DNA of 64,000 bases, from contig NC_068985.1 of NCBI RefSeq assembly GCF_001194135.2, positions 31,364,513 through 31,428,512 on the forward strand. Reading direction: 5' to 3'. The DNA is from Octopus bimaculoides (lineage: Eukaryota). Both the position numbers and the translations under genes were made by a program. Under the pieces are notes generated by a model. The model saw only the letters and a program-made list of their open reading frames with translations, searched no databases and had not been told where the DNA came from. Below are positions 2,929 through 33,600 of the stretch, in pieces; positions within the stretch are counted from its first letter, which is position 1; every line of letters begins with the position of its first letter.

Positions 2929-3235
2929 GTGCATGGCTTAGTGGTTAAGGTATTCGGCTCACGATCATAAGGCTGTGAGTTCAATTCCCAGTGATGCATT
3001 GTGTCCTCAAACAAGACACTTTATTTCATGTTGCTCCAGTTCACTCAGCTAGCAAAAATGAGTAGTACCTATATTTCAAAGGGCCAGCCTTGTCATGCTG
3101 AATCTCCATGAGAACTACATTAAGAGTACACATGTCTGTGGAGTGCTCAGCTACTTGCATGTTAATTTCAAGAGCAGGCTTTTCCACTGATTGGATCAAC
3201 TGGAAGCCTTGTTGTTGTGACCAACAAAGTGCCAG
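2929..3235 (+). mobile_element. tRNA-derived SINE with a CORE-like middle
   Basis: tggcttagtggtt..gttcaattccc..tgtgtcctcaaacaagacact; tail as in 29154-29330. Confidence 0.75.
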
Positions 3236-3427
3236 AATTAAATGTATTCATCTACTTCAGAATCTTTCTGTCTTCTCATTTATGATGTTTCAATATAACT
3301 CTGGCCAATTATATCTCTCCCTTGGTCTTTCATGAGGTGTCAAATTCTTTATATTCTTCAGTTCTAATTGAAAATTTTTATTCATTTAAATGTAGTTCTG
3401 AGAATATGTATTTTCAAGCTCATTTAA

Positions 3428-3636
3428 CCTTTTAGTATTTAAACTGACCATATCTAGCCTAAAATTTTCTTCCTATTCTATGTTTAAACCGACCAGATCT
3501 GGCCTCTCACACCTAACAATGTCATTGTAAAAGTAAGCAATCACATCATCAAAGCTAGGAAATAATGCATGATTACTTCAAATCCATGTGAATATATAAG
3601 CATTACATTTGACAGAGTAATCTGAAAGCTAAAGGG
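3428..3636 (+). mobile_element. TTAA-site MITE, copy 2
   Basis: ttaa|cctt..ctaaaggg|ttaa; collinear with copy 1. Confidence 0.72.
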
Positions 3637-5175
3637 TTAAATATATTCTTGATAATACATTTGTAACTGAGTGAAACAAAAATGACAAAAAATACCAGAA
3701 TATATGAATTAATAAATCTGTAGACATCCTACCACCATTTGTTCATTAGGCTATAAACTAACAACCTGGGAGTTAAACACCCCCTCCACATATACTTCCA
3801 TAAAAACAGTTCCAATTCCCAACTAACTCTTTCTGTGTAGTAGCATGGAGACAACTTCAGTATCAGCAATCTCCTTCAGACTTACACTGTAACCCTATTT
3901 CTGAGACAACCTAATGTCCACATGCTTCAGACCATAATGGCTGCCTGCTTAATTGTAGAAGCTCCCTATCATCTACATATGTAGCTTCATAGCCACTACA
4001 AAGATGAGTCAGCTAGGAAGTAAAAATCATGTAGAAAGTGGAATTTGCAAGCTAAACCATGAGCTACTCATGTAGGAAGACAGTAACTCTGAACAAGAAC
4101 CAGTATAAGATAAAGGAGGCTCTTCGGTGCAGTTGCAGATAATTTGTCATGCCAGCAGTATGATAAAATGCATCCAATCCATACTGTAAGCATATACACA
4201 ACTAAGTTGGCCAGTTTTTTCTTTTACAGTGTGAGAAAAAAAAAAATGATATGAAATGATTTAGCCTAGTCAGATTTTTGTTAAGCTAAATACCTAAGTT
4301 AAAAGATAGCATGAAATGAACACTTAGAAGATTTTCATAAATTCAAATCAACATCATCATACAATGTAGCTGAAATTTTACATTTAATTTTTTTTTTTTA
4401 TGGTTCTTAAAACATGACACATATTCCTTTTATGATGTCCTGCTATGGTTACATTTTAGCTCTAAAATTTCCTAGAAAGTCTGTAGGTTTTTATATAAGA
4501 TATTCATTTATACATTGGATTGTGCCTTCTGTAGTTTTTATCAGAGTCTTATGCTAAGATAATAAATAAATCTACATGAAAAACATTAAGTTAAGTCGGT
4601 ATTACAAAAATGAACAAGGAATAAGTATATAACGAGGAGAAAATATGAGCCAATGATTAATATTTGTACATTTATTTAGTGATTACTCACTGCACACTTA
4701 TTTCTAGTTAACTTTTTAATGTTCTCTGCATAAAATATATTAAAACAAACTTATTTCTTCTCTAATCAACTTTATTTTCTAACCCAACAAATTTACAATC
4801 TTGTATATTTACTTTTTTTTTTTATAAATATGTTGAAGGCTCTGCCCTGTTGATGAAATCAGAATAAGGCCAAAATATGTTCAGAGTTGTTTTCCATGTT
4901 ACTAGAAAAATGAAAATATTTAATAATTGTATTTGATTTTAGCATAAAGTGATTTGATCAGTGATCAAGTGTTGAACCCGAAAACAACTGAATCATGGTA
5001 GAAATACAAATATACCATTATATCCACTTGTTTTATTTTAAAAATAGTATTGTACATTATAGAGTGTCAAAAAAATGTTGCTGTCCATCTACAACCTGGT
5101 TGCTGTTACTATTACTATTTCACTGCACCTAAATTTATTCCCTTATTTACTTCTTTGGGATTAGCTTTTAAATGC

Positions 5176-5557
5176 TACCTGGCTATGTGGTAAGAAGTTT
5201 GCTTCCCAATCATGTGGTTCTGAATTCAGTCTGACAGTGTGGCACTTTTGGTGTCTTCTACTATAGCCCCTCATCAACCAAAGCCCTGAGTGGATTTAGT
5301 AAATGGAAACTGTATATGAGTCTGTAAGTATAGGTTTGTGTCTCTTTGTCTTGAAACTGTGTAAGAGTTGTAAAACAGTTGCCACTGTCATTCATTTCCA
5401 ATATTGTGAGAACATGGCCACAGGGAAATATTACCTTATTTAGAAACAGATGAGGGTTGTAGACAGGAAAGGCATGTGATTATAGAAAATTTGCCTCAGT
5501 AAACCTCATCCAATCCATACAAACATGGAAAAGTGGATGTTAAACAATGATAATGAA
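5176..5557 (+). mobile_element. CORE-type SINE with an RTE-like tail
   Basis: tggctatgtggtaagaagtttgcttccc head, gtgtcttctactatagcc core, ggatgttaaacaatgat tail. Confidence 0.75.
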
Positions 5558-5742
5558 ACTAACATAACTTTTAATGTTAAGACTGCTCCTCCGTCTGAAC
5601 ATCCATAAAATGTGTCTATGTAAACAAGGGGCATAGTCTTAAAATATGGTAGAACTCATGACACTCCAGTAAATATTGAAAATAGAATTTCCTCACAGGA
5701 CTTTTAGCTGAAAATTTCTTTCATAGCAAAATTTAATACATG

Positions 5743-5958
5743 TGAAGGGTGCGAAAAAGTTCCTCGCTTTGGGTAAAAGAAAATACGGGAGGATCAGTTA
5801 ATTAAGATATTATCCAACATATTCCCCTCTCAGATTCACACACTTATTGCAACAGTCCTTCAATTTTTATAAGCCTTGTAAAAGAACTTGAAAGGTTAGG
5901 CCTCCAACCAGGCCTTTTGTGATATTCTTAAAGCTAGGAACTTTTCAGCACCCCCTTG
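5743..5958 (-). mobile_element. Mariner-derived MITE
   Basis: Inverted ends (agggtgc.gaaaagttcct.gcttt), TA at 5959-5960; retains a transposase-like C-terminus (NKCVNLRGEYV*). Confidence 0.7.
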
Positions 5959-6191
5959 TACTGTTAACTTTGAGTCAATGTGGAAACCTCACTGTGATCA
6001 CTTGACCAGTTAAAACTAGCAATCAAATCTATCGAAAACCACATTCCACTGCCTTATAAAAAAAATACATGTTGGATAATGCATCCTGAAGAACACCAAT
6101 CACCAATATCATTTTATGCCCATTTCCCATTCAGGTACAGGCTATCTGAGCTTCATCATAGTCAATAGCTATCCCAGGTTTTATTACAGGT

Positions 6192-6535
6192 GCATACATA
6201 GCTGTGTGGTTAAGCAGCCTGCTCCCCACTGTGTGGCACCTTAGGCAAATGTCTTCTACTATAACCCCAGGCAAACCAAAGCTTTGTGAGTGGATTTTGT
6301 AGACAGAAACTGCATGGAAGCCCATCATACATGCACGCACATAATACATATATGTCTGTGTGTGTTTGTTTGCTTAAATCCCTGTAACTTAGCAGTTTGG
6401 TTAAAAAAGACTGATAGAATAACTACCTGGTTTAAAAAAAGAAAAGTAAGTACTGAGGTTGACTTGTTCAAATAAAAAACTCTTTGAGGTGGTGTCCCAG
6501 CATGGCTGCAGTTCAATGACTAAAAGATATAACAG
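6192..6535 (+). mobile_element. CORE-type SINE
   Basis: Same head and core; tail ggtgtcccagcatggctgcagt. Confidence 0.75.
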
Positions 6536-7273
6536 AGATAACTAGCTGACCTGGTACAAAGCAATAAAAATAACGTAACAGCACTCTTCCAAGTACCACT
6601 GATGTATTCCACATTTTGTGTTTAGTTGTTTTTGTTGCATTAATGCATTTCGTACACTTAAAAGTTTGATTTGTTTTTTGCCCGTATCTTTACTTCACCT
6701 GAAATTTTATTTGGTACATTGTGTTCCATTGTCTTTTTTCCTACAAATCAAGCATAGTTATTTATCTAAAGCTGTAAAACTGTGGGTATATTACATAAAG
6801 TGCTACTTACTTAAATTATTTAACTTAACCCATCTTTCAAAGAGGAATTGTCAGAACTTTGTGTATTCTACAGCTTTACTTTTCTCATGAGGTTAACATC
6901 AAAAAGACTCAGCTTGCTAATTCTAAACTTCAGACTATCCTATTTGCAATAATAATCTTGTGAAAGCACTCGGAAAATCTAAATACCCGAGTCAAAGAAA
7001 GATATCACTTTAAAACAGAGAGCCAACAATTCTTAAATTAAAAAAACAAAAAAACAGCAGACTCAAATTCAATTTATATAACTTATTACAAAAGAAGGAT
7101 GCATTTGCATTTTATTGTTTGATACCAAAACATTATGATTTACAGTTCAAATAAAATAAATAATCAAAACATTTTATTTTCATTGATTTATTAAAAAAAA
7201 AAAATCTTAGAATGGTGTAAATTACAGAAAAAAAGAAATAGAGGTAATTTTCTTTTTGTTTTGAAGATTAAGT

Positions 7274-7417
7274 TCATGATAAATTTGACTTTGTCATAGG
7301 CATTGTATATATGGGCTGCATGATATGGTGAACAAGATAAAACACAAAACCTATAAAGGCTGAAATACAGCAGAAGACCAAAAGTAGTACCAGATGATTC
7401 TCCTTATACTCATATAT
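7274..7417 (-). CDS. TMEM218: TMEM218 coding exon 3
   Basis: ttttacag|ATA...TGA, 144 nt; ends HHIMQPIYTMPM; AATAAA on the minus strand at 7187-7192 and 7173-7178. Confidence 0.88.
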   Translation of the reverse strand: MYEYKENHLVLLLVFCCISAFIGFVFYLVHHIMQPIYTMPMTKSNLS

Positions 7418-10400
7418 CTGTAAAATAAATGAATAAATAAGCATATATAATATGAATTAAAAAATCGTTAAAGTAAGTTTTGTCACAAACCTACCAGGTA
7501 TAAAACTATAAATTGCAAAAGGTTGACAGGAATTAACAAAAATATATCACACACTAACATCATCATCATCATTTAACGTCTGCTTTCCATGCTAGCATGG
7601 GTTGGACAATTTGACTGAGGACTGGTGAAACAGATGGCTACACCAGGCTCCAATCTGATTTGGCAGAGTTTCTACAGCTGGATGCCCTTCCTAACGCCAA
7701 CCACTCCGAGAGTGTAGTGGGTGCTTTTACGTGCCACCAGCACGAAGGCCAGTCAGGCGGTACTGGCGACGGCCATGCTCAAAATGGTGTATTTTACATG
7801 CCACCTGCACAGGAGCTAGTCCAGCGGCACTGGCAACAATCTCGCTCAGATATCTTTTCACGTGCCACCAGCAGAAGTGCCAGGAAGGCGATGCTGGTAA
7901 CGATCATGCTCAAATGGTGCTATTTATGTGCCACCGGCACGGAAGCCAGACAGCTGCTCTGGCAACAATCACGCTTGAACGGTGCTCTTAGTGCTCCACT
8001 GATATGATAATTTAAATCTCTAAAATAATTTCACTCCCATTAGTCTAAAACACCATGGTTGTGGCAATAATAGAAGTATAGTACTATTACTACCATCATT
8101 GAAACCACCCCCACTCACTCCCTGCCACTGATCTGTCTCCTATCTCTGTTCCTTACAGAGAGCTTTCAACTTTAAAAAATCCTATTCTCTACACGTATCT
8201 ATGTATTTCTGTCTTCAATGTTTTTATCTTAAAAAACTTCATATACTTGGCATTGATGTAAACTACATTAGAAAGTACTTCAACCCTAAACAATTGCTAG
8301 CAATACAAAAGCTGAGGGAGATTACACTTTAATGTATTTACTGGATGTGCAAAGTCAGTGTACATGTATAACAGAGCGCTAGTGTTTTGAGGGAAAAATT
8401 GAGCATAAGAATGAGATGCAGCATGCATCTAAACTAATAGTGCTGATTTGGGCATGTAATGCATATGGATGTAGACAGTTGCATACAGAAGTCCTGATTA
8501 TTTAAAGTGGATGGAACTTGTGGATAAGGCAACCCAGGAAGACATGGGTCAAAGTATTGAAAGCTGATCTGAAGACACTGAGCCTTACGAAGGAGATGAC
8601 TAAGAACCAGGATACCAGCACATTGCTGTACTTAAGTCCTGTCCACCACAGCAGAATTGATACAGGTGCTGGTGCCACATAAAAAGTACCCAGTACATTC
8701 TATGGAGTGGTTGGCATTAAGAAGGGCATCCAGCCATAAAACCAATGCCAGAACAGTCAATGGAACCTGGCAGATCCTTGGCCTTACCAGCTCCGGTCAA
8801 ACCCTCCAACATGTGCCAGCATGAAAAACAGACGTTAAATGATGATGATATCTTGATTACTTGATTAGTGAAGTGAAATTTTATTAGCTTATTGAAAATG
8901 AAACAAACTTCTTCAACAATATTTACTGATATGAACAAATTTTAAGTGTGGTTTAACAGTAGTTTAAAGAAAAATAGTTTAAAGGATTTTACCAAACTGT
9001 CATCAACAGGTACTGGATACTTTGATTTTCTTGGAATGACAATAAAAATTATTGTTAGTAAGGTACTCAGTAAAATTAAAATCGTTCCAAGATATCTAAA
9101 ATATAATAAAGAAAAAACATTTTTAACATATACAGTATATATAGTGATTCATACTGAAAATTACATAACTTGAGTAGCAGCTGGCTGAAGGCTTGATGTC
9201 ACAGCTCATTACTAGGATGATGTAAATATTTGGGACAAAGATTTATTTTCAAAGGTTCAGTATGTCAGAGCTGTAAAATCAGTACATCAGTACATATTGT
9301 AAAGCTGAGTTTGTGAGTGTGTGTGTGTGTTGCATCTATAGAAATCCACACCTTACAAGATAGCAATTTGGGAGTCACACCAATGGATTCCTCATGGTCG
9401 AAAATGCCCGGAATCGGCCACTTATTATTCTTTTCTTCCTTCCTAACAAGTGAATTTTTCCATTAAAAATAATTCTAAACCATAACTTCTAACAATTCAA
9501 CTTCTCTGGTTGACTTTAAGACCCCCCCCCCCAATAGGGGCTTTAACTCATACATTTTAGAGTGCCATGTTCTCCATTTTTCAGGAGCAAAAACTTTGAA
9601 TAGGTTTTATAAGATTTGGACTTTGGAATCTGGGCATAAAGATGAGTAGTATGAGATAAATATATCATGATTAGAATCTTTGATAGGGTGTGTAAAGAGG
9701 GAAAGAACCCTCATTAAAATTCTTAATCTCCAATTTTGATGAAACTCGAATCATAGGTATTCCAGTTCATTAGAAAAAATATAAAAGAAAAGTCTAATTC
9801 TTCAATTCCATGTGACACAGGCAATTCCGGGTATCTCTGCTAGTTTTTTTTATAACTGAACGTGATGGAATATGAGAAAAATGAGAAGTATATTATACAT
9901 ATATAGGAAAGTCCTATTAATCTAGGTAATCTGGTATACCTGATTTTCCATCAATTAATTTTGTGGAAGTGATATGACTGGCTACCAACACCACTTCATC
10001 ATTGTGTATATTCAAGTTAAAAAAACGAGTGGCCAGTACTTATATATTATGTATTTGTGTTTATCTATTTATGGTTGTAAATGTACCATCCAACACAATG
10101 ATTTTAAAGTAAGAATTAGGCAAACTCAGAAACAAAAGATAATTTGAAGGTGGGCATAAAAATTGAAAGAACTACCAAACTGCAATAGGTTCAGAAATGT
10201 ATTGATATATGACAAGACAGAGAGAAAGATAGAAAGTTTGTAACACAAAGGAAAATTTAAAGAATTCTTAAAAGACAACCTGCTGAAAGTAACAGACTAA
10301 ACCTGTAGATAGGGTAAGATCCCACCAAAAAGATAACGACATGGTGGTGAAATAGGTCTGTAGTAACGCTGTGCGCATGCGTAGTCTCACGCATACGTGG

Positions 10401-13400
10401 AATTCAACATCCAAGCTTTCCCGCTTTATTCTGTCTCTTTCTTGCTGGCCAGCGATTGAGCAAGGACGTGTCTAGCTGTCTCTCCATCTTTCGAACTCAC
10501 ACTAGACAGCTCACATCAATATACCAACGTCCCAACAACTATGTTCTCACACACCGAAGATGTCTCAACAAACAAGATTAAAGATGTATATTTTCCACAA
10601 TAAATAAATATTGTTTGTGTTGATAGTTTGGAGTTCAGCGTTCCGTTCATATTTCTAATTTAATATAGGAAAGTCAGGTGTACATCTAATGATATATAAC
10701 CCACTATCCTATAAAGTGGTGACCCCGACGTGATTCGTTCATACAACCCTTCTGATCTGTACAGCCTATGTGATCCTGTTCACACAGTTTTTCTTACAAA
10801 CTGGTGAATTCAAACACGCAGCCCGCTGAGCTATTTAACACTTTCCTATAAAGTGGTGACCCCGACTAAGAAAAAACGCGGCCATGGATTCTGGACTACC
10901 AACCTATAACTGGTGACCCCGACTAAAGAACAAATGCGGCCATGGAGACTGAATTACCAAGCAACGATGACCACCAATGCCACCAACATCTCCAACCATA
11001 GTCAACATGACTTACTATGTACACCAAACTAAACCACCGCGGCAAATCTCTCTTCGATTCTGTTAGGTGACTTAGCTTCACCACGNNNNNNNNNNNNNNN
11101 NNNNNNNNNNNNNNNNNNNNNNNNNNNNNNNNNNNNNNNNNNNNNNNNNNNNNNNNNNNNNNNNNNNNNNNNNNNNNNNNNNNNNNNNNNNNNNNNNNNN
11201 NNNNNNNNNNNNNNNNNNNNNNNNNNNNNNNNNNNNNNNNNNNNNNNNNNNNNNNNNNNNNNNNNNNNNNNNNNNNNNNNNNNNNNNNNNNNNNNNNNNN
11301 NNNNNNNNNNNNNNNNNNNNNNNNNNNNNNNNNNNNNNNNNNNNNNNNNNNNNNNNNNNNNNNNNNNNNNNNNNNNNNNNNNNNNNNNNNNNNNNNNNNN
11401 NNNNNNNNNNNNNNNNNNNNNNNNNNNNNNNNNNNNNNNNNNNNNNNNNNNNNNNNNNNNNNNNNNNNNNNNNNNNNNNNNNNNNNNNNNNNNNNNNNNN
11501 NNNNNNNNNNNNNNNNNNNNNNNNNNNNNNNNNNNNNNNNNNNNNNNNNNNNNNNNNNNNNNNNNNNNNNNNNNNNNNNNNNNNNNNNNNNNNNNNNNNN
11601 NNNNNNNNNNNNNNNNNNNNNNNNNNNNNNNNNNNNNNNNNNNNNNNNNNNNNNNNNNNNNNNNNNNNNNNNNNNNNNNNNNNNNNNNNNNNNNNNNNNN
11701 NNNNNNNNNNNNNNNNNNNNNNNNNNNNNNNNNNNNNNNNNNNNNNNNNNNNNNNNNNNNNNNNNNNNNNNNNNNNNNNNNNNNNNNNNNNNNNNNNNNN
11801 NNNNNNNNNNNNNNNNNNNNNNNNNNNNNNNNNNNNNNNNNNNNAGCTCTGCCAACTGACCACGACTTCCTGTGTACGGACATTCAACTTGTGTAATTCT
11901 TTTACGAACTGGATATATAGCTTTTTGTCTCTACAGACACTTTTAATATGTTCTGTGTTTTCACTCACACACACACTTGTGCACTCACACATTTTCTTTC
12001 ATTTGTACATTGCATGCATGTTCTCACGAGTGTACATTTCATTTCTTTCATTTTTCTTTGTGTGTGTTTGTGCTACATCTTGTGGGTGGTTTTCAGTGGC
12101 CATCCTGCCTCAGGCGTTCCAACAAAAAAAAATTATATTATCGTGCGTTCCACACTGGCGAGGGGAGCCCTGTAGTAACGCTGTGCGCATGCGTAGTCTC
12201 ACGCATGAGTAGAATTCAACATCCAAGCTTTCCCGCTTTATTCTGTCTCTTTCTTGCTGGCCAGCGATTGAGCAAGGACGTGTCTAGCTGTCTCTCCATC
12301 TTTCGAACTCATGCTAGACAGCTCACATCAGTATACCAACGTCCCAACAACCATGTTCTCACACACCGAAGACGTCTCAACAAACAAGATTAAAGATGTA
12401 TATTTTCCACAATAAATAAATATTGTTTGTGTTGATAGTTTGGAGTTCAGCGTTCCGTTCATATTTCTAATTTACTATAGGAAAGTCAGGTGTACATCTA
12501 ATGATGTATAACCCACTTTCCTATAGGTCTATAGATAGAGCCATAAAGGCTAACAGACAGGCAGGAAAAACTGCAAGGATGTGGGCAGCAAAGAGCAACA
12601 TGAAGAGAAGTTAGATATCAGGTATACTTAGTAAGAAGAGAAGCTGTGAATAAAAAATTTCAAATGTTCTAAGACATGGTGGCAGTGAATAAAAGAAAAT
12701 TGAGATGACATTGGGGCAACGTGTTCAGAATGATAAGGGTAAATTGGGTATAAGAGAAATCAGTTGTAGTGTACAAGAGAGAAGACTGTAATGGTATAGG
12801 TATGTATTGCTAATGGATGATGACAGCTGCATAAGCAAGTGCTGAGTGTCCAAGTGAATGGTACTTGTGGAAGAGGGAGACCAAGGGAGACTTGGGATGA
12901 GGTGGTGTGAAATGTTGCCAGGATTTTACATCTGATAAAGAAGATGATAGAAGAATATGTAAACTAGTGACATACGGTATTGCAGAAGACCTGAACACCC
13001 ATGCCGACTTAGTGCATGCATTCCTCCCTTTTGCTGTGTCCAGTCTCCATCCTTTCATCTCCTCAACTCATCATGTCATGACACCCATGACTGAGAGGAA
13101 GTTTGTGCATACTGAATATCTCCTGTCTTCATACCAAATCATAAGTCATGATGTTTGAGTAGAAAGGGATTGCATGCCAGCAAACTTTACTCATCCACTC
13201 TGACTCTCCTGTTATCATGCTTAGATATTACCTTGAGTATAAATCCAGACCCCTAATCAACATCTCATCTCTCCTCTGCACCACTCTAGCCATATATAAT
13301 ATGGAGTATCCCCTCCCCAGCAAGCACTTGTTTTAAGTGTCCACTTCAGGGTTTGATGAGGTAGTTAGCCACAATGCATCAATCTTATTTACGTATTTCT

Positions 13401-16400
13401 CTTCTCAAACAAATATACAATTCTCAATTTATTCTAACAAAGTTCACAGATTTTGGTCCATTCTTAATTCTAGACACCAATACCTACTAATCCTCTTGAA
13501 GATGAAATTTGTCTTATTGTATATCTCTAACCTATCATTGTTGCCCAGATTACACAATATTCCAATTTCTTTTGTAAAGCTGATGGTTGATGTAGAATGC
13601 ACGCCACCATTCAGTTCTCTTCCTTGATTGTCAATAATAAAAATTTGCAGTTGTTCCAGCTCATATAGACTATTTTAAATACTTCTGTTGTTTCATCTAC
13701 TCTCTGAATTGCTCCAATCACCATATGTTTGACTATTTGTCCTCCACAGAGTACATCTTTCTAAACTTGTTATTGTTGAGAATCACATTCCGAGTTATTT
13801 TAATGCACACAACTCCTCTAAGCTCCTGTACTCCTCCCAACAACACTGGGACAGAGGCCAAATCCCTTGCCATCTTAAGCTGTCTGCACCAGTAATCTTG
13901 AGTAATCTTGACCAACTTACTAAAACTCCAACTATGCTTGATCTTAAACTCACTGATACTTCAGATATACTGGTTGGATAAAGCTTTACTAATTCTACTC
14001 TCACTATTTTTGGCATCAAATGTGCTTTAGCATCATTCTGCCTGAAATGTGTGTGTGACTGATACCTTTCTCCTTGGCATATCCATTAAACAACCAAAGC
14101 ACATATCCTCAGCCCCTTAAAGTGGATCATGCGCAACTGCACTGCAGTTATACAGACATAGAACACAACATCAGGAGAAAAAAACACAATCACCAATTTG
14201 AAGGTATTCACCTACCACTGCAACACCTTCAAGAAGACCATCATGAAAGCAAAAACTGTTTTCCTGCATTTCACAATCTCCAAATGCTTTTGTCCCCTAA
14301 ATTGCAGCAGCAATTTCTGATTTTTTGTCAAAATGATTTTTACTAATTTTGCAGAATCTTCTACCATACTTATCACCTGACAGGACTTTTTAAATAGCAC
14401 CTGTACGGATTCCAATACTGCACTTGCAGACACACACACCACTTATAATCTTGATTAGGCAAGGAATAGTGAGGTTGACTGATGAGCTAGGATATTCACT
14501 TAAAGAATTTGGATGGATCTAAAGAACTGAGTTTTTTCTAAAATAGAGTGAATTTTTGAAATTGAGAGGAAGGGAGCAAGTTCTAAATGGGAGTGACTTA
14601 TTGAGTAAATGCTTTGCCAAATATCTTCATTGCATCTAGGCAGAAAGAAGAAATAATTGGATTATGTGTTGGTTGAATCTGTTGTAGATGATAAAGAAGT
14701 TAGAGAAAGGAAATGACAGTTCTATGCAAAGATCAAGTCTTTGATGATTGACCTCTGCACAAGAGACTGCAATTTGGGTCCAAGCAAATGTTTTTGCTAT
14801 GATAAATTTGACATCCCAAGTAAACTATCGTATAAAATTTTCCTGAAACTTTTCCATTCTATTTATATTTTGAATGGTACCCAAATTCCAGTGTCCTATT
14901 GTAATTTAGATTTAATATAAATTTTGTACTCTTCGTTTGTAAGAACACTGTAAATCGTTGTAGATACAGAAATAGCTTGTTAAAAAATTTCATGACAATA
15001 TTGGAGTTTAGATCATTAGAAATAATTATTCGTAAATCTTTAATTGCAGAAACCAAGGGAATGAGAGTAAAATCAAATTCATATTGTTCTGAATATTGCC
15101 ATGTCTGAAATCTAATTTTAATTTTAGATTTGAGTCAGCGATTTTAGAGGGATGGTTCAGTCGATTACATCGACCCAGTGTTCAACTCGTACTTATTTTA
15201 TTGACCCCGAAAGGCAGTCAACCTCGGCGGAATTTGAGCTCAGAACACAAAGAGCCAGAAGAAATGCCGCTAAGCATTTTCTCGATACGTTAACTCGCCA
15301 CCTTCATAAATGAAAACATTGCATTTGGACATGGCAATTTTTAGTTGCACTGAATTTGCTAATTGAATACGTTTTTAAAATCCTTCTTACAATGTGCACA
15401 GTCACCAAGTTAAAAAATGTCGTTAGTAACTCCAACTCAACGAGACAAATTGTCCAGTGTCTCCTCCGTAATCCTCCCGCTAGATTCTTTGGTAATCTTC
15501 AAGTTTAGGGGGGTAAAAAAAGTAAATAAAAATATTCAAGGGAAATAACTGAACGACTTACCAGTATTATCCGTTTTCTTCTAGCTGTTTATAAATAAAT
15601 CACACCCTAACCCTAACGTCAATCAAATCACGTGTGTGATTTATTTATAAACAGAGATGTACGTAGAATACTGGTAAGACGTTCAGTTACTTCCCTTGAA
15701 TATTTTTTTTTTACCCCCCCCCTAAACTTGAAGATTACCGATTCTTTAATCACTCTTTCTACAGGAACTACCCAACTACGGAAACATTGGTATTTCATCT
15801 CGCACAACAGCCATCTGAGAAGTACCGACATATCAGATACACATTTAAATGTTGCGTCTACTTATTTTGGCATAACTACAGGGTTTTACCCACCAGACTT
15901 TGGGAGGTCATAACTTTCAGAAAAATGAATATTTTTTAATGAAATTTTCTATGCATATAGTATTTACTATGTAGAATCCGAATATACAAAAATTTCCGGT
16001 GAAAGTGTTTTGGAATTGGGGTGGGGGACAATTTTCGGAAATTCCCCTCCCAAAGTCTGGGCTGTAAAACCCTGTAGTTATGCCCTTATTTTATCACATT
16101 ATATTTTTTTTGTCTCATTACAATTAGTGGCATCGCAGGAAGAGAAGATTTGGGAATAAAATTTGATGCCCTCAGTTTTGAAATTATACATTTTTCCACA
16201 CTCGTTCACCAGTAATTAATCTATTAATTAACACAATTAGAAGGTTAATATAGATGTTAATACAGGAACACATCGAGATTATGGAATTAAAGCAATTTAA
16301 ATAGTACAAATCAATGACGTCTGAAAGGAACAATTAAAGAACTGAAAAAACTTCAATTGGGTGTAGCCAAAACGGCATACTGAGAAAAATATTTTGCGTC

Positions 16401-17214
16401 ATATATTAATGAATTTACTTTTCGAAACAAGTCACTGATTGGTTAAAATTACCCAAATACGACAACTTTAACACGAAATAACTTCTGAAATACGAAATTT
16501 TGTCAAAAGCGTTCAGAGTAAACCGTGTTCTACGTAAGAAATTCTACCAGTATTCGAAGTTTCAAACTGTTCAGTTAAAAAAAAAACATCAATTAAAAAA
16601 CCTGTGATTCAAACTGAACAGATCCAAATAAAGTAATCTAGTTACAGTCTGATACCAAAGGCGAGTGATTGCCAACATCACTTAAATTCAATGTGTGTTG
16701 CCAACAACATATTTTTTCTTTAATTAAAAAATTTCCACGTGACTTTACGCACTCATATAAGTAAAATCTGCTTGTTTGATAATCTTTAAATTTTACTAGC
16801 ACAATCTTAGAAAAAAAAAACAAAAAGATTCCACGCATTTACCTGAAAGGGGCTTTTCGTAAGTACATTAACAAAAATTTTATATTTTAACTTGTATATT
16901 TTAAGTTTCGTAGATAAACTTTACCGTTAAATATATTCAAATTTTGATTTGAAATTAAAGAAAAAATTATAATGTAAAAATAAACGTGCCTAACTTTGAT
17001 GAAGTTTTATCAGATTATAATTAAAACTTCAAAACAACATAAACGGTTTATATATATATATAAATATTGTGTATGTAGATATATAAAATATTCAAATTTG
17101 TACTTGCCTGATTTTTCCAGTAGAATAACTGGTGAATACACAAATGGTCAGTGATATGATCCACATAGAAGCCAAAAGGACGATACCAACACCAACACCA
17201 AAAATCAGCCCCAT
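7274..17214 (-). CDS. TMEM218: Transmembrane protein 218 (ciliary transition zone), 3 coding exons, 117 aa
   Basis: Exons 17214-17108, 9095-8993 and 7417-7274 splice to MGLIFGVGVGIVLLASMWIISLTICVFTSYSTGKIRYLGTILILLSTLLTIIFIVIPRKSKYPVPVDDSLIYEYKENHLVLLLVFCCISAFIGFVFYLVHHIMQPIYTMPMTKSNLS. It has three hydrophobic segments and resembles remembered human TMEM218 (LGVGAG..W..C, FPR..FP, HYVLEPIYAKPL). Confidence 0.88.
7558..8002 (-). mobile_element. RTE LINE 3' UTR fragment
   Basis: Reverse complement of the family tail, with several gtgccacc(g/a)gcac units. Confidence 0.85.
8440..8850 (+). mobile_element. Decayed RTE LINE 3' fragment
   Basis: cccaggaagacatggg (PRKTW) and tail cagacgttaaatgatgatgat. 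Confidence 0.75.
8993..9095 (-). CDS. TMEM218: TMEM218 coding exon 2
   Basis: ttttag|A TAT...TTG|gtaaaa, 103 nt, phase 2-0; hydrophobic helix followed by IPRKSKYP. Confidence 0.88.
9287..9843 (+). mobile_element. Non-autonomous Helitron-like element
   Basis: A|TC start followed by taaagctg and (GT)n; GC-rich subterminal segment then CTAG|T end. Confidence 0.4.
10359..12525 (+). mobile_element. Short LTR retrotransposon (Gypsy-like, probably non-autonomous) in TMEM218 intron 1
   Basis: 355-bp LTRs at 10359-10713 and 12171-12525 (about 11 differences), TGTAG..CTATA ends, 4-bp TSD GGTC, PBS TGGTGACCCCGACGTGATT at 10717-10735, purine tract at about 12157-12170; 759 N inside. Confidence 0.9.
12560..14460. 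mobile_element. Old RTE fragments in opposite orientations (+ about 12560-12915; - about 12930-14460)
   Basis: + strand [16 protein letters not shown]; heavily decayed RT-like sequence on the minus strand. Confidence 0.5.
15132..15308 (-). mobile_element. SINE with a MetaSINE-like central domain
   Basis: Minus strand aaattccgccgaggttgactgcctttcggggtcaataaaataagtac. Confidence 0.55.
15491..15739. mobile_element. Merlin-type palindromic MITE
   Basis: GGTAATCTTC..GAAGATTACC, long inverted arms, perfect 8-bp TSD GATTCTTT, central CCCTAA repeats. Confidence 0.85.
15869..16084. mobile_element. Merlin-type MITE
   Basis: GGCATAACTACAGGG..CCCTGTAGTTATGCC, perfect 8-bp TSD CTTATTTT. Confidence 0.85.
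16200..16625 (+). mobile_element. Decayed Merlin (IS1016-like) transposase C-terminus and 3' end
   Basis: Broken frames give NIDVNTGTH and KYFASYINEFTFRN, similar to the Merlin VDP.TG.HT and F.SYL.EF..R motifs; ends in GATCC; the 3' region matches the MITEs at 56025 and 57128. Confidence 0.55.
17108..17214 (-). CDS. TMEM218: TMEM218 coding exon 1 (GC donor)
   Basis: ATG at 17214; ends AG|gcaagt, 107 nt, phase 2. Confidence 0.85.
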
Positions 17215-17226
17215 AGTGGGTTACCC

Positions 17227-17268
17227 GTCGCGATGACAACGTTGTTTATTTATTCCAAACTAGCCAAT
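17227..17268 (-). promoter_or_regulatory. TMEM218 promoter: RFX X-box-like site and CCAAT box
   Basis: GTCGCGATGACAAC at 17227-17240 (one mismatch to the GTYNCYATRGYAAC-type consensus), 13 nt upstream of the ATG; CCAAT at 17264-17268. Confidence 0.65.
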
Positions 17269-20972: not shown

Positions 20973-21579
20973 GTGCACCACCCAACCCAACTTTGTTTGA
21001 AAAAGTGCCACACCCTAACAGTTGAGGGAACCCGTGGAAGAGGCAGGCCCAGGAAGACCTGGGCTGAGGTGGTGAGGCAAGACCTTCGTACATTGGGCCT
21101 CACCAAGGCGATGACTACTGACCGAGACCTTTGGAAATGTGCTGTGCGTGAGAAGACCCGGCAAGCCAAGTAAGATCGTTGCCAGTGCCCCTGGCTCTTG
21201 TGCGGGTGGCACATGAGATGCACCATTTTGAGCGTGTCCGTTGCCAGTACTGCCTGACTGGCTCCCGTAGGATTTTCGAGTGAGATCGTTGCCAGTGCCC
21301 CTGGACTGGCTTGTGCGGGNNNNNNNNNNNNNNNNNNNNNNNNNNNNNNNNNNNNNNNNNNNNNNNTTCGAGCGTGGCCGTTTTCGTGCGGGTGACACGT
21401 AAAAGCACCCACTACACTCTCTGAGTGGTTGGCGTTAGGAAGGGCATCCAGCTGTAGAAACTCTGCCAAATTAGATTGGAGCCTGGTGTTGCCATCCGGT
21501 TTCACCAGTCCTCAGTCAAATCGTCCAACCCATGCTAGCATGGAAAGCGGACGTTAAACGATGATGATGATGATGATGA
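20973..21579 (+). mobile_element. RTE LINE 3' fragment
   Basis: [27 protein letters not shown], then the family 3' UTR and (GAT)n tail. Confidence 0.88.
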
Positions 21580-24109: not shown

Positions 24110-25634
24110 NNNNNNNNNNNNNNNNNNNNNNNNNNNNNNNNNNNNNNNNNNNNNNNNNNNNNNNNNNNNNNNNNNNNNNNNNNNNNNNNNNNNNNNNNNN
24201 NNNNNNNNNNNNNNNNNNNNNNNNNNNNNNNNNNNNNNNNNNNNNNNNNNNNNNNNNNNNNNNNNNNNNNNNNNNNNNNNNNNNNNNNNNNNNNNNNNNN
24301 NNNNNNNNNNNNNNNNNNNNNNNNNNNNNCATTTTTAGTAAAGTTCTAATAATATAGATTACTAACAATGGTACAAGGCCACTAATTATGTTAGGGCTCA
24401 ATCAATTACATTAATTTCTGAACTAATTTTATCAACAATGGAAAAATAAAAGGTAAAGGTGACTCCAGTATGATTTGAGTGTAAAGGGACATTGCTAAAT
24501 TACCTCAAAGCATTTTGGTTATACTCTTCCAAATTTACTGCCCATCATCCCCTTATATATAAAATTAAAATGATTTCTTATATAAGCACAAGGCTTCATT
24601 TTATGGGGGGGGGGGAGAAAATGCAAAACTGTGTACTGCATGTCTTTATCAAAGACATTTATGATATAAGAAGAGTAATCAGCTTCAACTGGAAATTGAA
24701 ACCAGGTCTTAGCTTTGGCTTACATGGAGTTTGCTCTAAAGCATTTGTCACAACCTCATTAATAATTTCTACTGGCACAAAGTCACAAGTTTGTAGAGGA
24801 AGAATGTAGTAAATTGAACCAACCCCAGCTCATGCCTGATATTCATTTTGTACACTATGGAGGGATGAATGACAAAGAAAATACTTGTGAGTTCTGAATT
24901 CAGAATATAGAGGAACAAAGCTAAATACACAATAGGCATCTGGTCTGCAAATTTACCTTTTCTTATCTTCCTTTTAATATTGATTTCTCCCTCAGAGGCC
25001 TTCATTTTTTTTTTCTTATATTAGTTGAGAAGCTTGAGCATTAAATCATTGTAGGCATATAGCTAGTAATAAATATTCATAGAACATATGACAGCTTGGC
25101 AATAATGCTTAAGGTCTAGTGAGTAAAAACAATAGAATAAGCAGAAGTACAGAACTGTGAATGAGTGTGTGTGTGAGTGTATACATGTCTAACAGAGAGA
25201 TGAGAATCTGTATATGTATGTGTGCATGTTTGTGAAAGAAAAAGTTAAACATCAACAAAACGGTGCGAGTAATAGAATTAGGAATAGACAAGTATGCAAA
25301 AGAGAGAGAGAATGTTAGAGACGAACAGACACATTAAGAAACGGAGAAAAGGATGGAAGAAGAGCAATCGTTTTGGTCATGAAACAACATAAACAAAACT
25401 ACTGGTTTCAACAAGACATTTGGACAGATATACAACATCTGTCAGAAATACAAAACACATAGATGCAGAGCTAAAACAATCCCACAAAACAGCCAGATAG
25501 AATATTAGTAAGACTCAGATCAGTAGCATACAGATAAATATTTAAACAGACACTCAATAAACTTGCAGATAGGGAATTTTTTCAAAGAGAAAAGAAAGTG
25601 CCCCGCTGTCATTTTGACAAAATGTCTGACTGGC

Positions 25635-27681
25635 TCAATTGAAGTTGAAGTTATTCCAAGTCCTAGCCAGAGCCAAAGTTGCATTAGTCATACTGACAGA
25701 AACAGGAGATGTAGCCAAGGAAGAACTTATGGCTTGGTGAGAAGTGGTCAGTGTTTGACCAGTATCTGCAGCAGGAAGTGAAGCAATAGTTTGTACAGTC
25801 TGTTGTTGTTGTTGATTGGCAGCAGCAGCAGCAGCTGCCAGTTGAGTATGCACCAGATTCTGTCCAAGGTGACTGAGTTCAATTGTTGTCGTTGGCTGAC
25901 CACCAACAACGGACACTGTGCCAATTTGTGCTGGTTGAATTTGAACCATTGCTGTATGGCCTGTAGGGTTAGCCGTATTAGTAACTCTAGCCACTGAGTA
26001 TTCTCCTGAAGGCTGGTAATCATGAGATAATGTTTGTGTCAGCTCAGTCATAGCTTGGGTGAGGAGATCAGCCTGTTGATATTGGTCAGAGATAGCTTGT
26101 GTTGAAACAGGACCATGCACCTCAGCCATAAATTCTTCCTCAGTAACACCATGGGAATTGTCAGACAACATTGCAGCTGTGTGTTCTTCTTTCACCCGTT
26201 TGACAGATGATTGTGGAGGTGACATTTCAGGATGCTTTTTCCTGTGATGTTGCATCAACTTTGCCTTGCTGGCATACTGCTTGTGACAGAAATCACACTG
26301 ATGTGGCATTGTGGTAATACTCCCCACCATTTGGGAGTATGTTGGGTTTGGATGGCCTGGAACTTCATGGATTTGAGACTTCTTCCGACTGCTCATTGGT
26401 AGTTCAGATCCAGGATGGTTCTTTAATATATGAGCTTTTCGCTTTGAGCTGGATTTGTAGACTTTTTCACAGTACTGACAATAATAATCTCTCTGAGTTT
26501 TCAATATAGGAAGCTTCAATTCAGGCACAGTATCTGGTTTTATGTCAGGATGTCTTTTGGCCAAATGGTTAACCAGCATACCCCGCCGTTTGAAACCAAG
26601 GAGACATGTGTGACATTTGTATATAAAACGGTGATAATCATTAGGTGATACTTTGGGGATGAATTTTTTATGGTTGACTGGTTTTTCTTCCTTGTTTGCT
26701 AATCGTGCTTCACGCTCTTCTGAATGCATCCTTTTCATATGTTCTTTTAGTTTGTCCTTTCTTTTGAACTGGCGACCACAGCTTTCACACATAAACTCCC
26801 GGTGAGAGGAATGTCGTAACATGTGCAATTTCAGCTTATCCGGCCGTGGAAATAGCTTATCACATTCAGGGCAGGGATATTTTATTGCTGAATGGAATGC
26901 ACGCATGTGCTTTCGAATAGTAACAAATTCATCAAATACCCGGGTACATATGGGACAGTTATATTTACCATTGGCATCTTCATGTTCAGTCACATGACTC
27001 TTTAATGAACCTACTTGGTCAAAGTCTGAATGACAGAGTGGACACTCATAATATTTTTTATCACTATGTGTCTTCATGTGACAGGACAATGCAGAGTTAT
27101 TCATGAAGCGCTTAAAACACACTTGACATTGAAGTGGTTTAGAATTCTCATCACCATGACACAAAAGGTGTTTCTGAAGGCGTTCATAGTTACTAAAAGC
27201 TTTCCAACATTTCTGACATTTATGTGGTCGTTGAGGATTGTGCAACATCTTGCGTTTAGTTTTGCCATGTACACTAGCATGTTCTATAAGGTCTTGTTGT
27301 TTTTGGAAGGATAAAAAACATACTGGACACGCCAAAACATCTGAGTCTAAAGTAATGACACTATCAGACTCTTCCAAAGAAGCAACTTCATTGCTGGCAT
27401 CTCCATTGGTAATCTGTTGCATTTGGATGGCATTTGCTAGCACTGGTTTTGCTTCATTGGGATCACAAGCAAGCCTTTTCACTTCATCTAAGCCAACATC
27501 TTCAGCAGCATGGGTGAGTGTGTGTAAGTTCAGTAAGTTTGAATTATCAAATGTCAGGTCACAATGTGTACACACCCACTCATTTCCACCAGTTACTTTG
27601 CCTTTCTTACGATACAGAGATTTTAATGATCGACGTCTAAGGGCCTCATGATCCAACCTGCGATGATATTTCTTCAGTGTT
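25635..27681 (-). CDS. PRDM10: PRDM10 terminal coding exon, 11 C2H2 fingers plus Q/A-rich tail
   Basis: Open frame of 2047 nt after ttttccag| (phase 2); stop at 25637-25635. Confidence 0.95.
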
Positions 27682-30600
27682 CTGGAAAAAAAAAACATTT
27701 GCATATTAATAAGTGTGTATGTGTATTTGGGTGTGTATATGTGTGTGAATAATCAATTATCCTTATAAAAAGCAAAGTTTGTTTCTTTGTATGTTGACTG
27801 CTGAAAACACTAAACAAAATTGATAATATTTCAGGTATTTCATTTCATTTAAATTAATTTGATCATTCTGCAGATAACTGTGCACTTATCTTCCGAAAAC
27901 GGAATGGAGAGGGCCAAGTTGGTGGTGTATTGGCTCCTATTTCTAGCAATTCATGTACTGTCTATTTCACCATAATGCATTTTACAGAGTGAAAAAATAC
28001 TTCACCTATCAATCAATCCACCTCCAACTTTCTCAAAGTTTATACATTACAGTTATTCCTTTGAAGTTACTGCTGGACCTCTGCCTTCTCTCTGTCTATA
28101 TGTCTCTTTCTATGTCTCTATCTCTCTCTCTCTGGTTCTATATGTGTCTCTCTCTCTCACTATCTCTACCTCTTTTTTCTCTCAAGAGAAAAACATGTGA
28201 GAGAGAGAAAGGGGGCTCCACAGAAAAACTGCTTTCTCTCTGTCTATATGTCCCTCTCTATGTCTCTATCTCTCACTACCTCTACCTCTTTTTCTCTCTA
28301 GAGAAAAAATATGTGAGACAGATAGAAAGGGGTTGGTAGTAGTGGTGACAGTATAGATTAATAGGTATTGGTGGGTGTGGTGGTAGTATTGGTAGCACAA
28401 TTTAGATATTCTAAATAAATGTTAAAAATTATGTTATGTAATATTGAAATACCTTTTAACAACTTTTATTGTAAGGAAAATGGGCATTATGATAGATGCC
28501 AATATGTGCCTTATTAATTAATACATTTGAGTACAAACCGGGCTGAAGGCTGGGAGGCCTGCTAGCATAATATAAAAGTACTTAAGAGGCATAAATATAA
28601 TTTTTGTAAATTTATCAAGCATAGGGAAGTACCTTTGAAGTAACAAAGTTAAAATACAGAAAAAGAAAAATTTAAACTGGCTTCATATGAAGCGAAACAT
28701 GGTAAAACAAAACAACAGTAACACAAACAATTTGTTTCTTCTTACCAATCATCAGAGAAACTAATCAAGAGGCTCTAAAAAAATTTCATTTATAGCTTAG
28801 TAAGAGGAAAAAGGTTAGTACTTATGACCTTTTTGTGAGGCCGCCAAGATTAGTGGAGAGAAAGAAAGATCTTAAACTGAATCTGAAGGCTTGCAATGGA
28901 GAACATTTTTAACAAACACTGAAGTGTTGAGTTATTGGTATTTTAGAAATGAAGGAAATCTCAAGTGCAGGAGATAGCTGTGAAAACAACTTAGAGGATT
29001 CGGCAAAATACCCTTACAGATGGATCTTCTTAGCTGTTTTCACAGTTATTCTCCTATATTTGAGATGTCCTTAATTTCTTATAATGCAAAGAGCCAGTTG
29101 GTGGTTAAGCCTACCACCTTGGGGATTTGGGAATATTGCAGTAAATCAAATGTTAGCACTCCGTCGCTTACGACGTCGAGGATTCCAGTTGATCCGATCA
29201 ATGGAACAGCCTGTTCGTGAAATTAACGTGCAAGTGGCTGAGCACTCCACAGCCACATGTACCCTTAACGTAGTTCTCGGGGATATTCAGCATGACAAAG
29301 TGTGACAAGGCTGACCCTTTAAATTACAGGTACAACAGAAACAGGAAGTAAGAGTGAGAGAAAGTTGTGGTGAAAGAGTACAGCAGGGTTCGCCACCATC
29401 CCCTGCCGGAGCCTCATAGAGCTTTAGGTGTTTTCACTCAATAAACACACACAATGCCCGGTCTGGGAATCGAAACCGCGAGCCTATGATTGCGAGTCCG
29501 CTGCCCTAACCACTGGGCCATTGCGCCTCCACAGTAAATCAAATAGGTAAAAGGGAATTAGCAATTAACTCAGACAAGATTATATATAAATGCCAGCAGT
29601 CAAAACATTGAGGAGGATCACAGCTGATATAACACAGACATGGTTCTTGGGCCAGAATTAACAAAGTCGAGGAAATGCAGATTGCGAGAGTAACTGGGTA
29701 ACAAATATTTATAGAATTTCATTTTAATGTAAATCTTCCAACAGCATATGTGAAGATTTGCAATAAATTTATGAAAGCAAGGAAATGACTAAATAGAAAC
29801 TAGTAACTTACTTGTTTAGATAGAATGTAGAAGATTTCTTCTTCCAAGGATAATTACAGATTTCTCCATTGGCAGACTTGAAAAATAAAAAGTTTTATGA
29901 GGCATTATTTATGATAAATTTAAATGTACTAGTTTGTTTATAAAAGCCATTAAAATAATTATATTATTAAATATATTAAAATAATTATATTATTGGCATA
30001 GCTTAAGTATACGCTTATGGAGTAGAAAATTTCCCCAACTTTTGCCAAGGAATAAAAGATTTATAACATCAAAACTAATAAGGATATAATCTTGTTTTTA
30101 TAAATATTTACAGTGATCCTAGTTGAAATAATGGTTTTATAAATACCTTCTGATAAAATTACCTATCATATACAATTTGCAGTAGTCTCTATAAAAAATA
30201 GTTTATAGAGCAATAATAGAGAAATAATTAAGTTATTCTTTCTATCAGGTCATCCCATAAGTTCTGTCTGAATTTTGAATATAGAAAACAAGTGATCAAA
30301 TGTTATATTCAATTGAAATTTAATCATCAATGTACTTTCCCTGATCATCTATGACTTCCTTCCATCTATTTACAAGCTTTTTAATCCCATCAATGTAAAA
30401 CTCTTTTGGTTTCAAAGCGAAGAACTCTGAAATGTCAGTTTCGACCTCCTGCTGGCTTGCAAAAGTTATGTTCCCCAAATGATTCTGTAAACTACAAAAC
30501 AAATGGTAGTCTGAAGGAGCAAGGTCAGGAGAATAAGGTCGATGGGGAATTTTTTCCCTACCAAGTTCTTCAATCTTCTGTGATGTGATTTTTGCAGTGT

Positions 30601-33600
30601 GGGGTCGCACATTGTCCTGATGAAACATCACACCTTTTCGATTCACTAAAGCAGGTCTTTTTTACTTCAAAGCTTGGTTCAAACACTCTAATTGCTGACA
30701 ATAGACTTGAGCATTGATTGTTGCATTAGGTGGTAACAATTCAAAGTGAATTACTCCTTTGCAATCCCACTAGACAGAGAGAAGAACCTTTTTCCCATGA
30801 AGTTCCCTTCTTGGTTGTGGTTGAGCTTTTTCCCTTTTACCAAGCCACTGTTTACGACGTTAAACATTTTGATAGAAGATCCATTTTTTGTCACCAGTCA
30901 CAAGTCTATCCANNNNNNNNNNNNNNNNNNNNNNNNNNNNNNNNNNNNNNNNNNNNNNNNNNNNNNNNNNNNNNNNNNNNNNNNNNNNNNNNNNNNNNNN
31001 NNNNNNNNNNNNNNNNNNNNNNNNNNNNNNNNNNNNNNNNNNNNNNNNNNNNNNNNNNNNNNNNNNNNNNNNNNNNNNNNNNNNNNNNNNNNNNNNNNNN
31101 NNNNNNNNNNNNNNNNNNNNNNNNNNNNNNNNNNNNNNNNNNNNNNNNNNNNNNNNNNNNNNNNNNNNNNNNNNNNNNNNNNNNNNNNNNNNNNNNNNNN
31201 NNNNNNNNNNNNNNNNNNNNNNNNNNNNNNNNNNNNNNNNNNNNNNNNNNNNNNNNNNNNNCAACTGGACGTCCTGTTCGATCTTCATCTTCAAGGCTAA
31301 AATCTCCACTTCTGAATTTTGCAAATCATCTTCTGCAAGTTTTTTCATTCAAGCATTCTTTCCCATAAACTGAGTGTATGTTTCGAGTCGCTTTGGTTGC
31401 TGAGTTTCCTTTTTTGTACTCATAAAGCATTATGTGCCTCAAATGCTCTTTGGATACTTCCATGTTAGAAAGGGTTTTAATCAAAGAAATTTTAATTCTA
31501 TTATTCTGTAAAATAATATTTAATTAGTTTAAATGTACACAAATGCATAAAAATAATTTTTAATTCCATTAGACATTCTAAAATACTATTAAATCTCATT
31601 CAATTTTAAAAAAGGTAAAATCGGACAGAACTTATGGGATGACCTGATACGTTGGGGATGATATTATATACTATTAATTGGCATTAGAAACAGCATACAG
31701 TTATGATACTATTGAACTAATTACACAATATTATCACATTTCTGAACAATTAACTGGCTACAGATCTAATGCAACCATAAAAACAGATATCAAACAGAAT
31801 AAAGGATAAGATTCAAATACATAAAAAAATAAAAGTCCATGAATATAATTAGAGAAGACTGGAGAGAATTAATGGAATCAAATATTATGCAAAAGAATTA
31901 AAGATTAGGATTACACAAAAGAATTAAGGAAAGATGACAATTAATAGCCAAATTGAGAAAGATTAAGAAAAAATTTAGAAACAAAATCACTCTGATTATA
32001 AATAAAAGAGAATAATAGAGAAGCAAAAGGACATTAGTTATATTTACCACTTTTGGGTGCCGTCTCTTTCGTTTCAATGTTCCTGCTTGTAAAGAGAATC
32101 CTTTACGTCGGTTCTTCTGCATCATTGTTTCACCTCTAATACTAAAGTCATCATCTTGATGGCGGTTTGATGTATTTTCTTCATGAACAACTAAATGCTT
32201 CTGAAGTGCAGCTGATGTTTTAAATCGTTTATTACATTCATAACAAGGCCATTTGCGTTCTTGTTCATCCAAAGCTGTCAATTGGATAAATTCAGAATGA
32301 ATCACATGAAATTCTAATTTACAAAATGGAACATTTTAAAGTTAACATTACTTTTAACCCTTTAGCAATCAGATTCCTCTGTTCAAATGTGATGCTTATT
32401 TATCCATTGTTTTTAATTAATCATGCATTAACTCATTGCTTTCAGATTTCAATGTAGTGATTGTTATTTTTAGAATGACATTGTAGGGTAGGTGTAAGAG
32501 GTCTGACCTGGTTTGTTTGAATATAAAACAGGTAAATATTTGGGCCAGATTTGGCCAGTTTAAATGCTAAAAGGTTACAGTTATAAATTCTTTGCATCAG
32601 TTATTAAGATATAATAATATTATGATGGCTAGTCTTTAACTAAATCAAACTTGTCCATTTTACATGTCTTCTGTCCTCCTCCAGCAAAGTCCCTCAATCT
32701 TTCAGTCACATACTAAACTGCCTTCTCATTTATAATTTGTCTTGAAGCATGAACTTTGCATGGATTCAAATTGAACATTAACTGTATTAACATCAAATAG
32801 TTATCTCTACTTTGTAGAAGAATCTGAGAAGGCTTATCTTCAATTGAAGGAGAGCCTGATAGGGATAGCGATTCTGCTCCACTTCCTTAGATAAAATTAT
32901 ACAGAAGTAATTAGTTTTAAAGTTTTATGGCAGTGGTTTTTATCTGGGGTCCATATAAGATTTTATTGTTAAAAAATTTATGTGCAATAAATTAGTTATA
33001 CATCTCCAATGCACAAAATATTAAAATTTTTTCATACAATTCCTAATAATATTTCATCATCATCATCATCGTCGTTTAACGTCCGCTTTCCATGCTAGCA
33101 TGGGTTGGACGATTTGACTGAGGACTGGTGCAACCGGATGGCTACACCAGGCTCCAATTTAATTTGGCAGAGTTTCTACAGCTGGATGCCCTTCCTAACG
33201 CCAACCACTCGGAGAGTGTAGTGGGTGCTTTTACGTGTCACCCGCACGAAAACGGCTACGCTAAAAAAACAGTAAGATTTTCCTTTTATGTATAGTGAAT
33301 AGCTGTGGACATCCAGTAGAGAAAAGTAGGAATCAAAGGGGTCTACAGGCAAAAAATGGTTGCAAACCACTGCTCTGTGGTATACAACCTAGTTGCCATA
33401 TCACAGTGGAAAAAAAGAATTCAGTGTTATGATACATAAAATATATAAACTATAAATAATGACAATGGTGATAATAATGATGATGATGATATATTTCACA
33501 AGTATTTTTATATATTGTAGTATTATAGTAATACATCAGGCAACAATAAACTCAAAAATAGAAGGAAATAGAAATAAAAACTCTCGGTTTAATTCTAAAA

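Follow-up and report, generated by a model that had tools for sequence, protein, structure and literature searches.

The locus described here raises the question of whether three short, widely spaced exons on one strand form a single working gene or only appear to. The window, which is the whole stretch of DNA analysed and to which positions refer unless another contig is named, is 64 kb of the Octopus bimaculoides genome, and the element in question spans 7274-17214 on its minus strand. A sequence-only reading had proposed that it encodes an orthologue of the small ciliary transition-zone membrane protein TMEM218 and that the gene was hidden from annotation. We are highly confident that the element is the single-copy O. 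bimaculoides TMEM218 orthologue, with three coding exons and three membrane-spanning segments, which by homology would act like its nematode and mammalian counterparts.

A three-exon gene of the TMEM218 family

When the segments were read from the minus strand and spliced, exons of 107, 103 and 144 nucleotides (nt) joined in frame to give 354 nt, that is 117 codons and a TGA stop. The spliced product of 117 amino acids (aa) is MGLIFGVGVGIVLLASMWIISLTICVFTSYSTGKIRYLGTILILLSTLLTIIFIVIPRKSKYPVPVDDSLIYEYKENHLVLLLVFCCISAFIGFVFYLVHHIMQPIYTMPMTKSNLS. A script enumerating all GT/GC-AG spliced paths that give exactly this protein returned a single model, and a Kyte-Doolittle scan with a 19-residue window found three hydropathy peaks above 1.6, at residues ~3-28, ~38-56 and ~79-99. 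The exon lengths, the protein size and the three hydrophobic segments given by the sequence-only reading all agree with these results. The parts of the gene are as follows, with TM1 to TM3 denoting the three transmembrane (TM) segments and a slash marking each exon boundary.

17108..17214, minus strand: coding exon 1, 107 nt, with the ATG at 17214, codons 1-35 and two bases of Arg36; encodes TM1 with the invariant GxGxG
9096..17107, minus strand: intron 1, phase 2, GC-AG (CAG/GCAAGT ... TTTTAG/), nominally 8,012 nt including an assembly gap
8993..9095, minus strand: coding exon 2, 103 nt, from the last base of Arg36 to Leu70; encodes TM2 and the conserved Pro57-Arg58
7418..8992, minus strand: intron 2, phase 0, GT-AG, 1,575 nt, holding two inverted copies of a ~185-nt interspersed repeat
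7274..7417, minus strand: coding exon 3, 144 nt, Ile71-Ser117 and the TGA at 7276..7274; encodes TM3 and the C-terminal QPIYTMP (family consensus EPxxAKP)

Intron 1 splits codon 36 (Arg) after its second base, and intron 2 follows codon 70. The first donor, CAG/GCAAGT, is a GC donor whose remaining positions fit the usual donor consensus; the acceptor of exon 2 is TTTTAG/AT, the second donor is TTG/GTAAAA and the acceptor of exon 3 is TTTTACAG/AT. At the start codon, an in-frame TAA lies 9 nt 5′ of the ATG, and positions -3 and +4 are A and G.

Assignment to the family comes from profile searches. Pfam family TMEM218_N (PF25810) matches residues 2-58 with positions 3-59 of its 60-position profile at 30.1 bits against a curated cut-off of 27 (E = 4.9e-7), and no other family came near it in the scan of the 117-aa protein. 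When 1.84 billion representatives were scanned exhaustively with HMMER at a threshold of E <= 1e-3, 91 relatives were returned, nearly all of 104-125 aa and aligned end to end. All relatives that carry a name are called TMEM218, and they come from Argonauta, the clam Ruditapes, Priapulus, the pangolin (Manis) and cyprinid fishes; in the same scan a Manis TMEM218 isoform scored E = 5.5e-11 with 34% identity over its full length. PF25810 was matched independently by 51 of the 56 aligned relatives, and no other family was recurrent among them. A word-indexed protein search found two Octopus proteins only, and other phyla were reached only through the exhaustive scan. No second Octopus family member or paralogue was seen in the exhaustive HMMER search, and a sequence search of the PDB with the 117-aa protein found no solved structural relative. 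The proposed orthology to TMEM218 is thus upheld by a profile match above its cut-off and by 91 relatives of which every named one is TMEM218.

The structure of the gene could be compared across the six species in which the exons were mapped.

O. bimaculoides, O. sinensis and Argonauta hians: exons of 107/103/144 nt, intron 1 donor GC (exact spliced models)
Priapulus caudatus: exons of 119/103/141 nt, intron 1 donor GT (exact spliced model)
Grass carp (Ctenopharyngodon idella): exons of 110/103/135 nt, intron 1 donor GT (exact spliced model)
Manis javanica: exons of 110/103/135 nt, intron 1 donor GT (last 115 residues of a longer model)

In all six, intron 1 is in phase 2 at the basic residue that follows TM1, intron 2 is in phase 0 after the loop between TM2 and TM3, and exon 2 measures 103 nt (6/6). 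The introns of Manis javanica lie in Arg37 (phase 2) and after codon 71 (phase 0). Intron positions matching those of the human gene had been claimed, and the match holds for the mammalian and fish genes that were read (Manis javanica and grass carp). Like the vertebrate proteins (Manis javanica, M. pentadactyla and grass carp), the octopus protein has about 115 aa, three TM segments, GxGxG in TM1, PR after TM2 and a C-terminal motif resembling EP(I/V)YAKP, and its gene shares with theirs the three coding exons, the intron phases and the 103-nt exon 2. It differs in that identity is only ~30-34%, exon 1 has 107 nt in the octopus and 110 nt in the vertebrates, exon 3 has 144 against 135 nt, and the vertebrate intron 1 donor is GT where octopods have GC.

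Among the octopods the likeness is closer: the O. sinensis (P0002) and Argonauta hians (P0003) proteins also have 117 aa, their exon lengths and GC donor are the same, and each gene has an X-box-like site 23-26 nt 5′ of the ATG. Identity falls from 90% (O. sinensis) to 51% (Argonauta hians), and intron 1 differs in length: it is ~8 kb long in O. bimaculoides, its O. sinensis counterpart measures 4,953 nt, and that of Argonauta, where the three exons are contained in 2.4 kb, has 555 nt. The GC donor, which the sequence-only reading had picked out, reads GCAAGT at window position 17108, GCAAGT in O. sinensis (L001 10108) and GCAAGG in Argonauta (L005 1108). By this comparison it is genuine and octopod-conserved, with GT in the other three species.

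Constraint, a lost arginine and a candidate X-box

Residues common to the family are retained in the octopus, namely G8 and G10 (56 of 56 relatives), W18 (54/56), P57 (55/56) and R58 (43/56), and QPIYTMP stands at the place of EPIYAKP. Some observations nevertheless weigh against the identification as a TMEM218 orthologue in working order. The Pfam score exceeds its cut-off by a margin of 3 bits only, and the exact protein was found on genome contigs only, with no octopus transcript contig carrying it. The ratio of nonsynonymous to synonymous divergence (dN/dS) is 0.4-0.5, which denotes moderate constraint only, and the close pair of Octopus species offers just 22 substitutions. In addition, where 47 of 56 relatives have a juxtamembrane Arg as TM3 begins, both Octopus species have His78-Leu79 (window ~7396-7391).

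This last change may touch a residue of medical interest. The positions of the human disease variants (PMC8009330) fit G9, R59 and R80 of the 115-aa core of the pangolin protein, which implies an offset of 35 residues, and through this offset the TM3 Arg would be the residue altered in the recurrent human p.Arg115Cys/His variants. In Argonauta the Arg is displaced by one position; the vertebrate proteins differ from those of Octopus in retaining it. Its replacement in Octopus, together with the low identity to vertebrate TMEM218, would suit a lineage-specific TMEM218-like protein that has diverged in function and lost its role at the transition zone. We regard this alternative as improbable, because the protein has kept its length, topology and motifs and the gene its intron positions, a conserved X-box-like site of the kind typical of ciliary genes lies upstream, and the exhaustive search saw no paralogue.

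Less probable still, and in our view very unlikely, is that the locus is a decaying or non-functional relic of TMEM218, a pseudogene that still reads through by chance. By the Nei-Gojobori method, O. bimaculoides and O. sinensis differ with dN 0.054 and dS 0.105, and the dN/dS of 0.52, obtained from 14 nonsynonymous and 8 synonymous differences, could be expected of such a relic, as could the loss of the family's common Arg. However, O. bimaculoides, O. sinensis and Argonauta hians all have an intact 117-codon open reading frame (ORF), with its start and stop codons and each of the four splice sites in place, even though dS between O. bimaculoides and Argonauta has reached 0.92. In that comparison dN is 0.37 and dN/dS is 0.40 (78.7 nonsynonymous and 43.3 synonymous differences), and Gly8, Gly10, Trp18 and Pro57 have been kept. 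By these estimates the constraint is real but moderate, as expected of a short, mostly hydrophobic protein.

Upstream of the start codon lies a candidate binding site for RFX factors.

17227..17240, minus strand: candidate RFX X-box GTTGTCATCGCGAC, 26 to 13 nt 5′ of the ATG, a putative regulatory site

The same sequence is found in O. sinensis (L001 9975-9988). Argonauta has GTTGTCATCGTAAC at -23 (L005 978-991), the sole such site in 1 kb, and it falls in the longest invariant block of an upstream region that otherwise aligns poorly. One half-site, GTTGTC/GACAAC, matches experimentally supported X-boxes of Drosophila, and the other half has one mismatch to RYYNYY N1-3 RRNRAC (PMC2375033). With at most one mismatch allowed, the consensus RTHNYYWTRRNRAC has 112 matches in the window, where 109.7 would be expected. 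Since this density is that of chance, the motif by itself carries no weight and only its conserved position in Argonauta counts; positional conservation between species, not mere presence, has been reported to predict RFX control (PMC2375033). The site is better treated as a lead than as a result, and it suggests that octopus TMEM218 may be under RFX control. Two readings were weighed jointly at this point, that the GTTGTCATCG..AC element 13-26 nt 5′ of the ATG is a working RFX X-box, and/or that His-Leu is a natural "compensated" substitution at the presumed pathogenic Arg. Taken together we hold them tentatively, as possible but with the balance somewhat against them.

Assembly gap, intron content and existing annotation

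One of the assembly gaps in the window falls within the gene.

11086..11844: assembly gap of 759 N within intron 1, touching no coding sequence and also present in GCA_001194135.2

Intron sequence of 1,990 nt separates the gap from exon 2, and 5,263 nt separate it from exon 1. Being wholly intronic, the gap makes the reading frame across it irrelevant; its length is an estimate, and the only thing that it leaves uncertain is how long intron 1 is (nominally 8,012 nt, of which 7,253 nt were read). The O. sinensis locus (L001) has no run of N and carries the same three exons, as well as the same PRDM-type zinc-finger gene upstream and the same TPR-repeat gene downstream; these two neighbours are common to Octopus species. 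Intron 1 aligns collinearly with that of O. sinensis at either end, over only ~850 nt in total, and ~6.4 kb have no counterpart there; protein alignment with the orthologues showed no residue missing at the junction of exons 1 and 2. The O. sinensis alignment does not bridge the gap directly, since it does not extend into the central part of the intron, and continuity therefore rests on exon order, the collinear intron ends and the shared neighbours. It is scarcely credible that a scaffolding error joined exon 1 to exons 2-3 and made the gene an assembly artefact, for although a gap of estimated length does separate them, a 356-nt direct repeat flanks it and most of intron 1 is unaligned to O. 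sinensis, the ungapped chromosome of that species preserves exon order and orientation, with a separation of 4.95 kb and the same neighbours on either side, the Argonauta exons are 555 nt apart, and the intron ends are collinear. On this evidence the sides of the gap belong to one gene and the gap is harmless.

Intron 1 had been described as 8 kb in length and filled with transposable elements (TEs). The length was about right, and 1,113 of the 7,253 bases read (~15%) have a second copy in the window; on the other side, seven ORFs of intron 1 (82-138 aa) and one of intron 2, searched as possible TE coding remnants, gave no Pfam match. The repeat content of intron 1 is thus plausible and partly borne out, by short interspersed repeats only.

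Two repeats were recorded. The 356-nt direct repeat (96.9% identity) that flanks the gap lies at 10358-10713 and 12170-12525, with a weaker partial copy at 53655-53780, and the O. sinensis intron lacks it; the copies could be interspersed repeats, the terminal repeats of an element with its interior in the gap, or an assembly duplication. The ~185-nt interspersed repeat has at least seven copies with 72-95% identity, at 7550-7746, 8666-8849, 21383-21572, 33061-33250, 37197-37535, 46818-46955 and 62600-62782. Scans of the whole window for transfer RNAs and Rfam families were both empty, and this repeat is consequently not tied to a short interspersed nuclear element (SINE) derived from a transfer RNA. 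On size alone it would be judged similar to a SINE or to a miniature inverted-repeat transposable element.

Contrary to what the sequence-only reading had supposed, the gene proved to be neither hidden nor misannotated in this genome. A protein of 100% identity and coverage, "transmembrane protein 218 [Octopus bimaculoides]" (P0001), is present in NCBI, UniRef and EukProt, and the second match of the word search is the O. sinensis "transmembrane protein 218-like" (P0002). On CM046605.1 of GCA_001194135.2, where the locus sequence is the reverse complement of window positions 1-27214, the annotated gene covers a range of 9,941 nt that equals window 17214..7274 exactly. The TMEM218 gene was therefore known beforehand, and a correct annotation of it, with identical coding limits, name and coordinates, is public. 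There is no difference between our model and P0001; an existing automatic annotation has been rediscovered. The gene was said to be invisible to the ORF track, and this applies only to the mechanical, prokaryote-style ORF list (minimum length 60 aa), in which none of the three exons is present in its coding frame, and not to the public annotation.

In a third species the public model appears to be in error. The O. vulgaris product (GCA_951406725.2, OX597818.1) has 93 aa (P0005), is without exon 1 and diverges within exon 3. At that locus (L007, gene at 3001-7277), exon 2 (~3566-3668) and exon 3 (~4783-4926) are both intact in the DNA and identical to those of O. sinensis. The 93-aa model is probably wrong and could be corrected.

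Other features of the window were noted in passing.

25635-27704, minus strand: last large exon (a 689-aa ORF) of the PRDM-type C2H2 zinc-finger gene, with more exons towards 64000

Located 5′ of TMEM218 and sharing its strand, this gene has an annotated product of 1,488 aa with PR/SET and zinc-finger domains. The same neighbour is found in O. sinensis and O. vulgaris, and its model is longer in O. vulgaris (1,808 aa) than elsewhere (1,483-1,488 aa). Six further assembly gaps are located at 727-736, 21320-21366, 24110-24329, 30913-31261, 36267-36461 and 61831-62337, and several entries of the ORF list, among them 30730-31368 and 61722-62450, are artefacts of reading through runs of N.

Predicted role at the ciliary base

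What the octopus protein does can be proposed from its relatives. TMEM218 is a protein of three TM domains whose conservation extends across metazoans and to some ciliated protists (PMC4794247), and the human protein has three TM helices, with biallelic variants p.Gly44Val, p.Arg94* and p.Arg115Cys/His (NP_001245172.1 numbering) leading to disease of the Joubert/Meckel spectrum (PMC8009330). The sequence-only reading, which had described a three-span transition-zone protein linked to Joubert and Meckel syndromes, is in line with this literature. In Caenorhabditis elegans, TMEM-218 (T23E7.5) is expressed only in ciliated neurons, where it is located at the transition zone, and its localisation requires MKS-5, CEP-290 and MKS-2 (PMC4794247). 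It is dispensable alone, shows a synthetic interaction with nphp-4 and is regarded as a peripheral component of the MKS module (PMC4794247). The octopus protein is likened to it through that paper's description of a small family member with three TM segments, and the function that is experimental in the nematode is a prediction by homology in the octopus.

By analogy, octopus TMEM218 would belong, as a peripheral membrane component, to the MKS module at the ciliary transition zone, where CEP290, MKS5/RPGRIP1L and core MKS proteins would recruit it. In redundancy with the NPHP module, it would help to build the gate at the ciliary base. Most likely the octopus protein does the same job in the membrane of the ciliary base, and it is from such relatives that we infer its expression, splicing, localisation and function.

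A transcript-like sequence was seen for a relative. A 153-aa TMEM218 relative (P0004) that shares 44% identity with the octopus protein is encoded by an uninterrupted ORF of 462 nt on Logan contigs of ~1.4 kb (L008-L010, from SRR8281686, SRR8281687 and SRR20545813). These contigs are probably transcripts of another mollusc and would represent a contiguous mRNA for that species only.

Little is at stake in the identification itself, as the conservation of TMEM218 across metazoans has been reported (PMC4794247) and the octopus model is public. The useful outcomes are of a negative or housekeeping kind, that is a harmless gap, a conserved GC donor, an accurate reading of exons from raw sequence and an error in the O. 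vulgaris model. The two tentative readings would reach further. If functional, the GTTGTCATCG..AC element would place a cephalopod transition-zone gene under RFX control, and, if the substitution is indeed compensated, the octopus His-Leu could tell the role of the Arg that is presumably changed in the human p.Arg115 variants.

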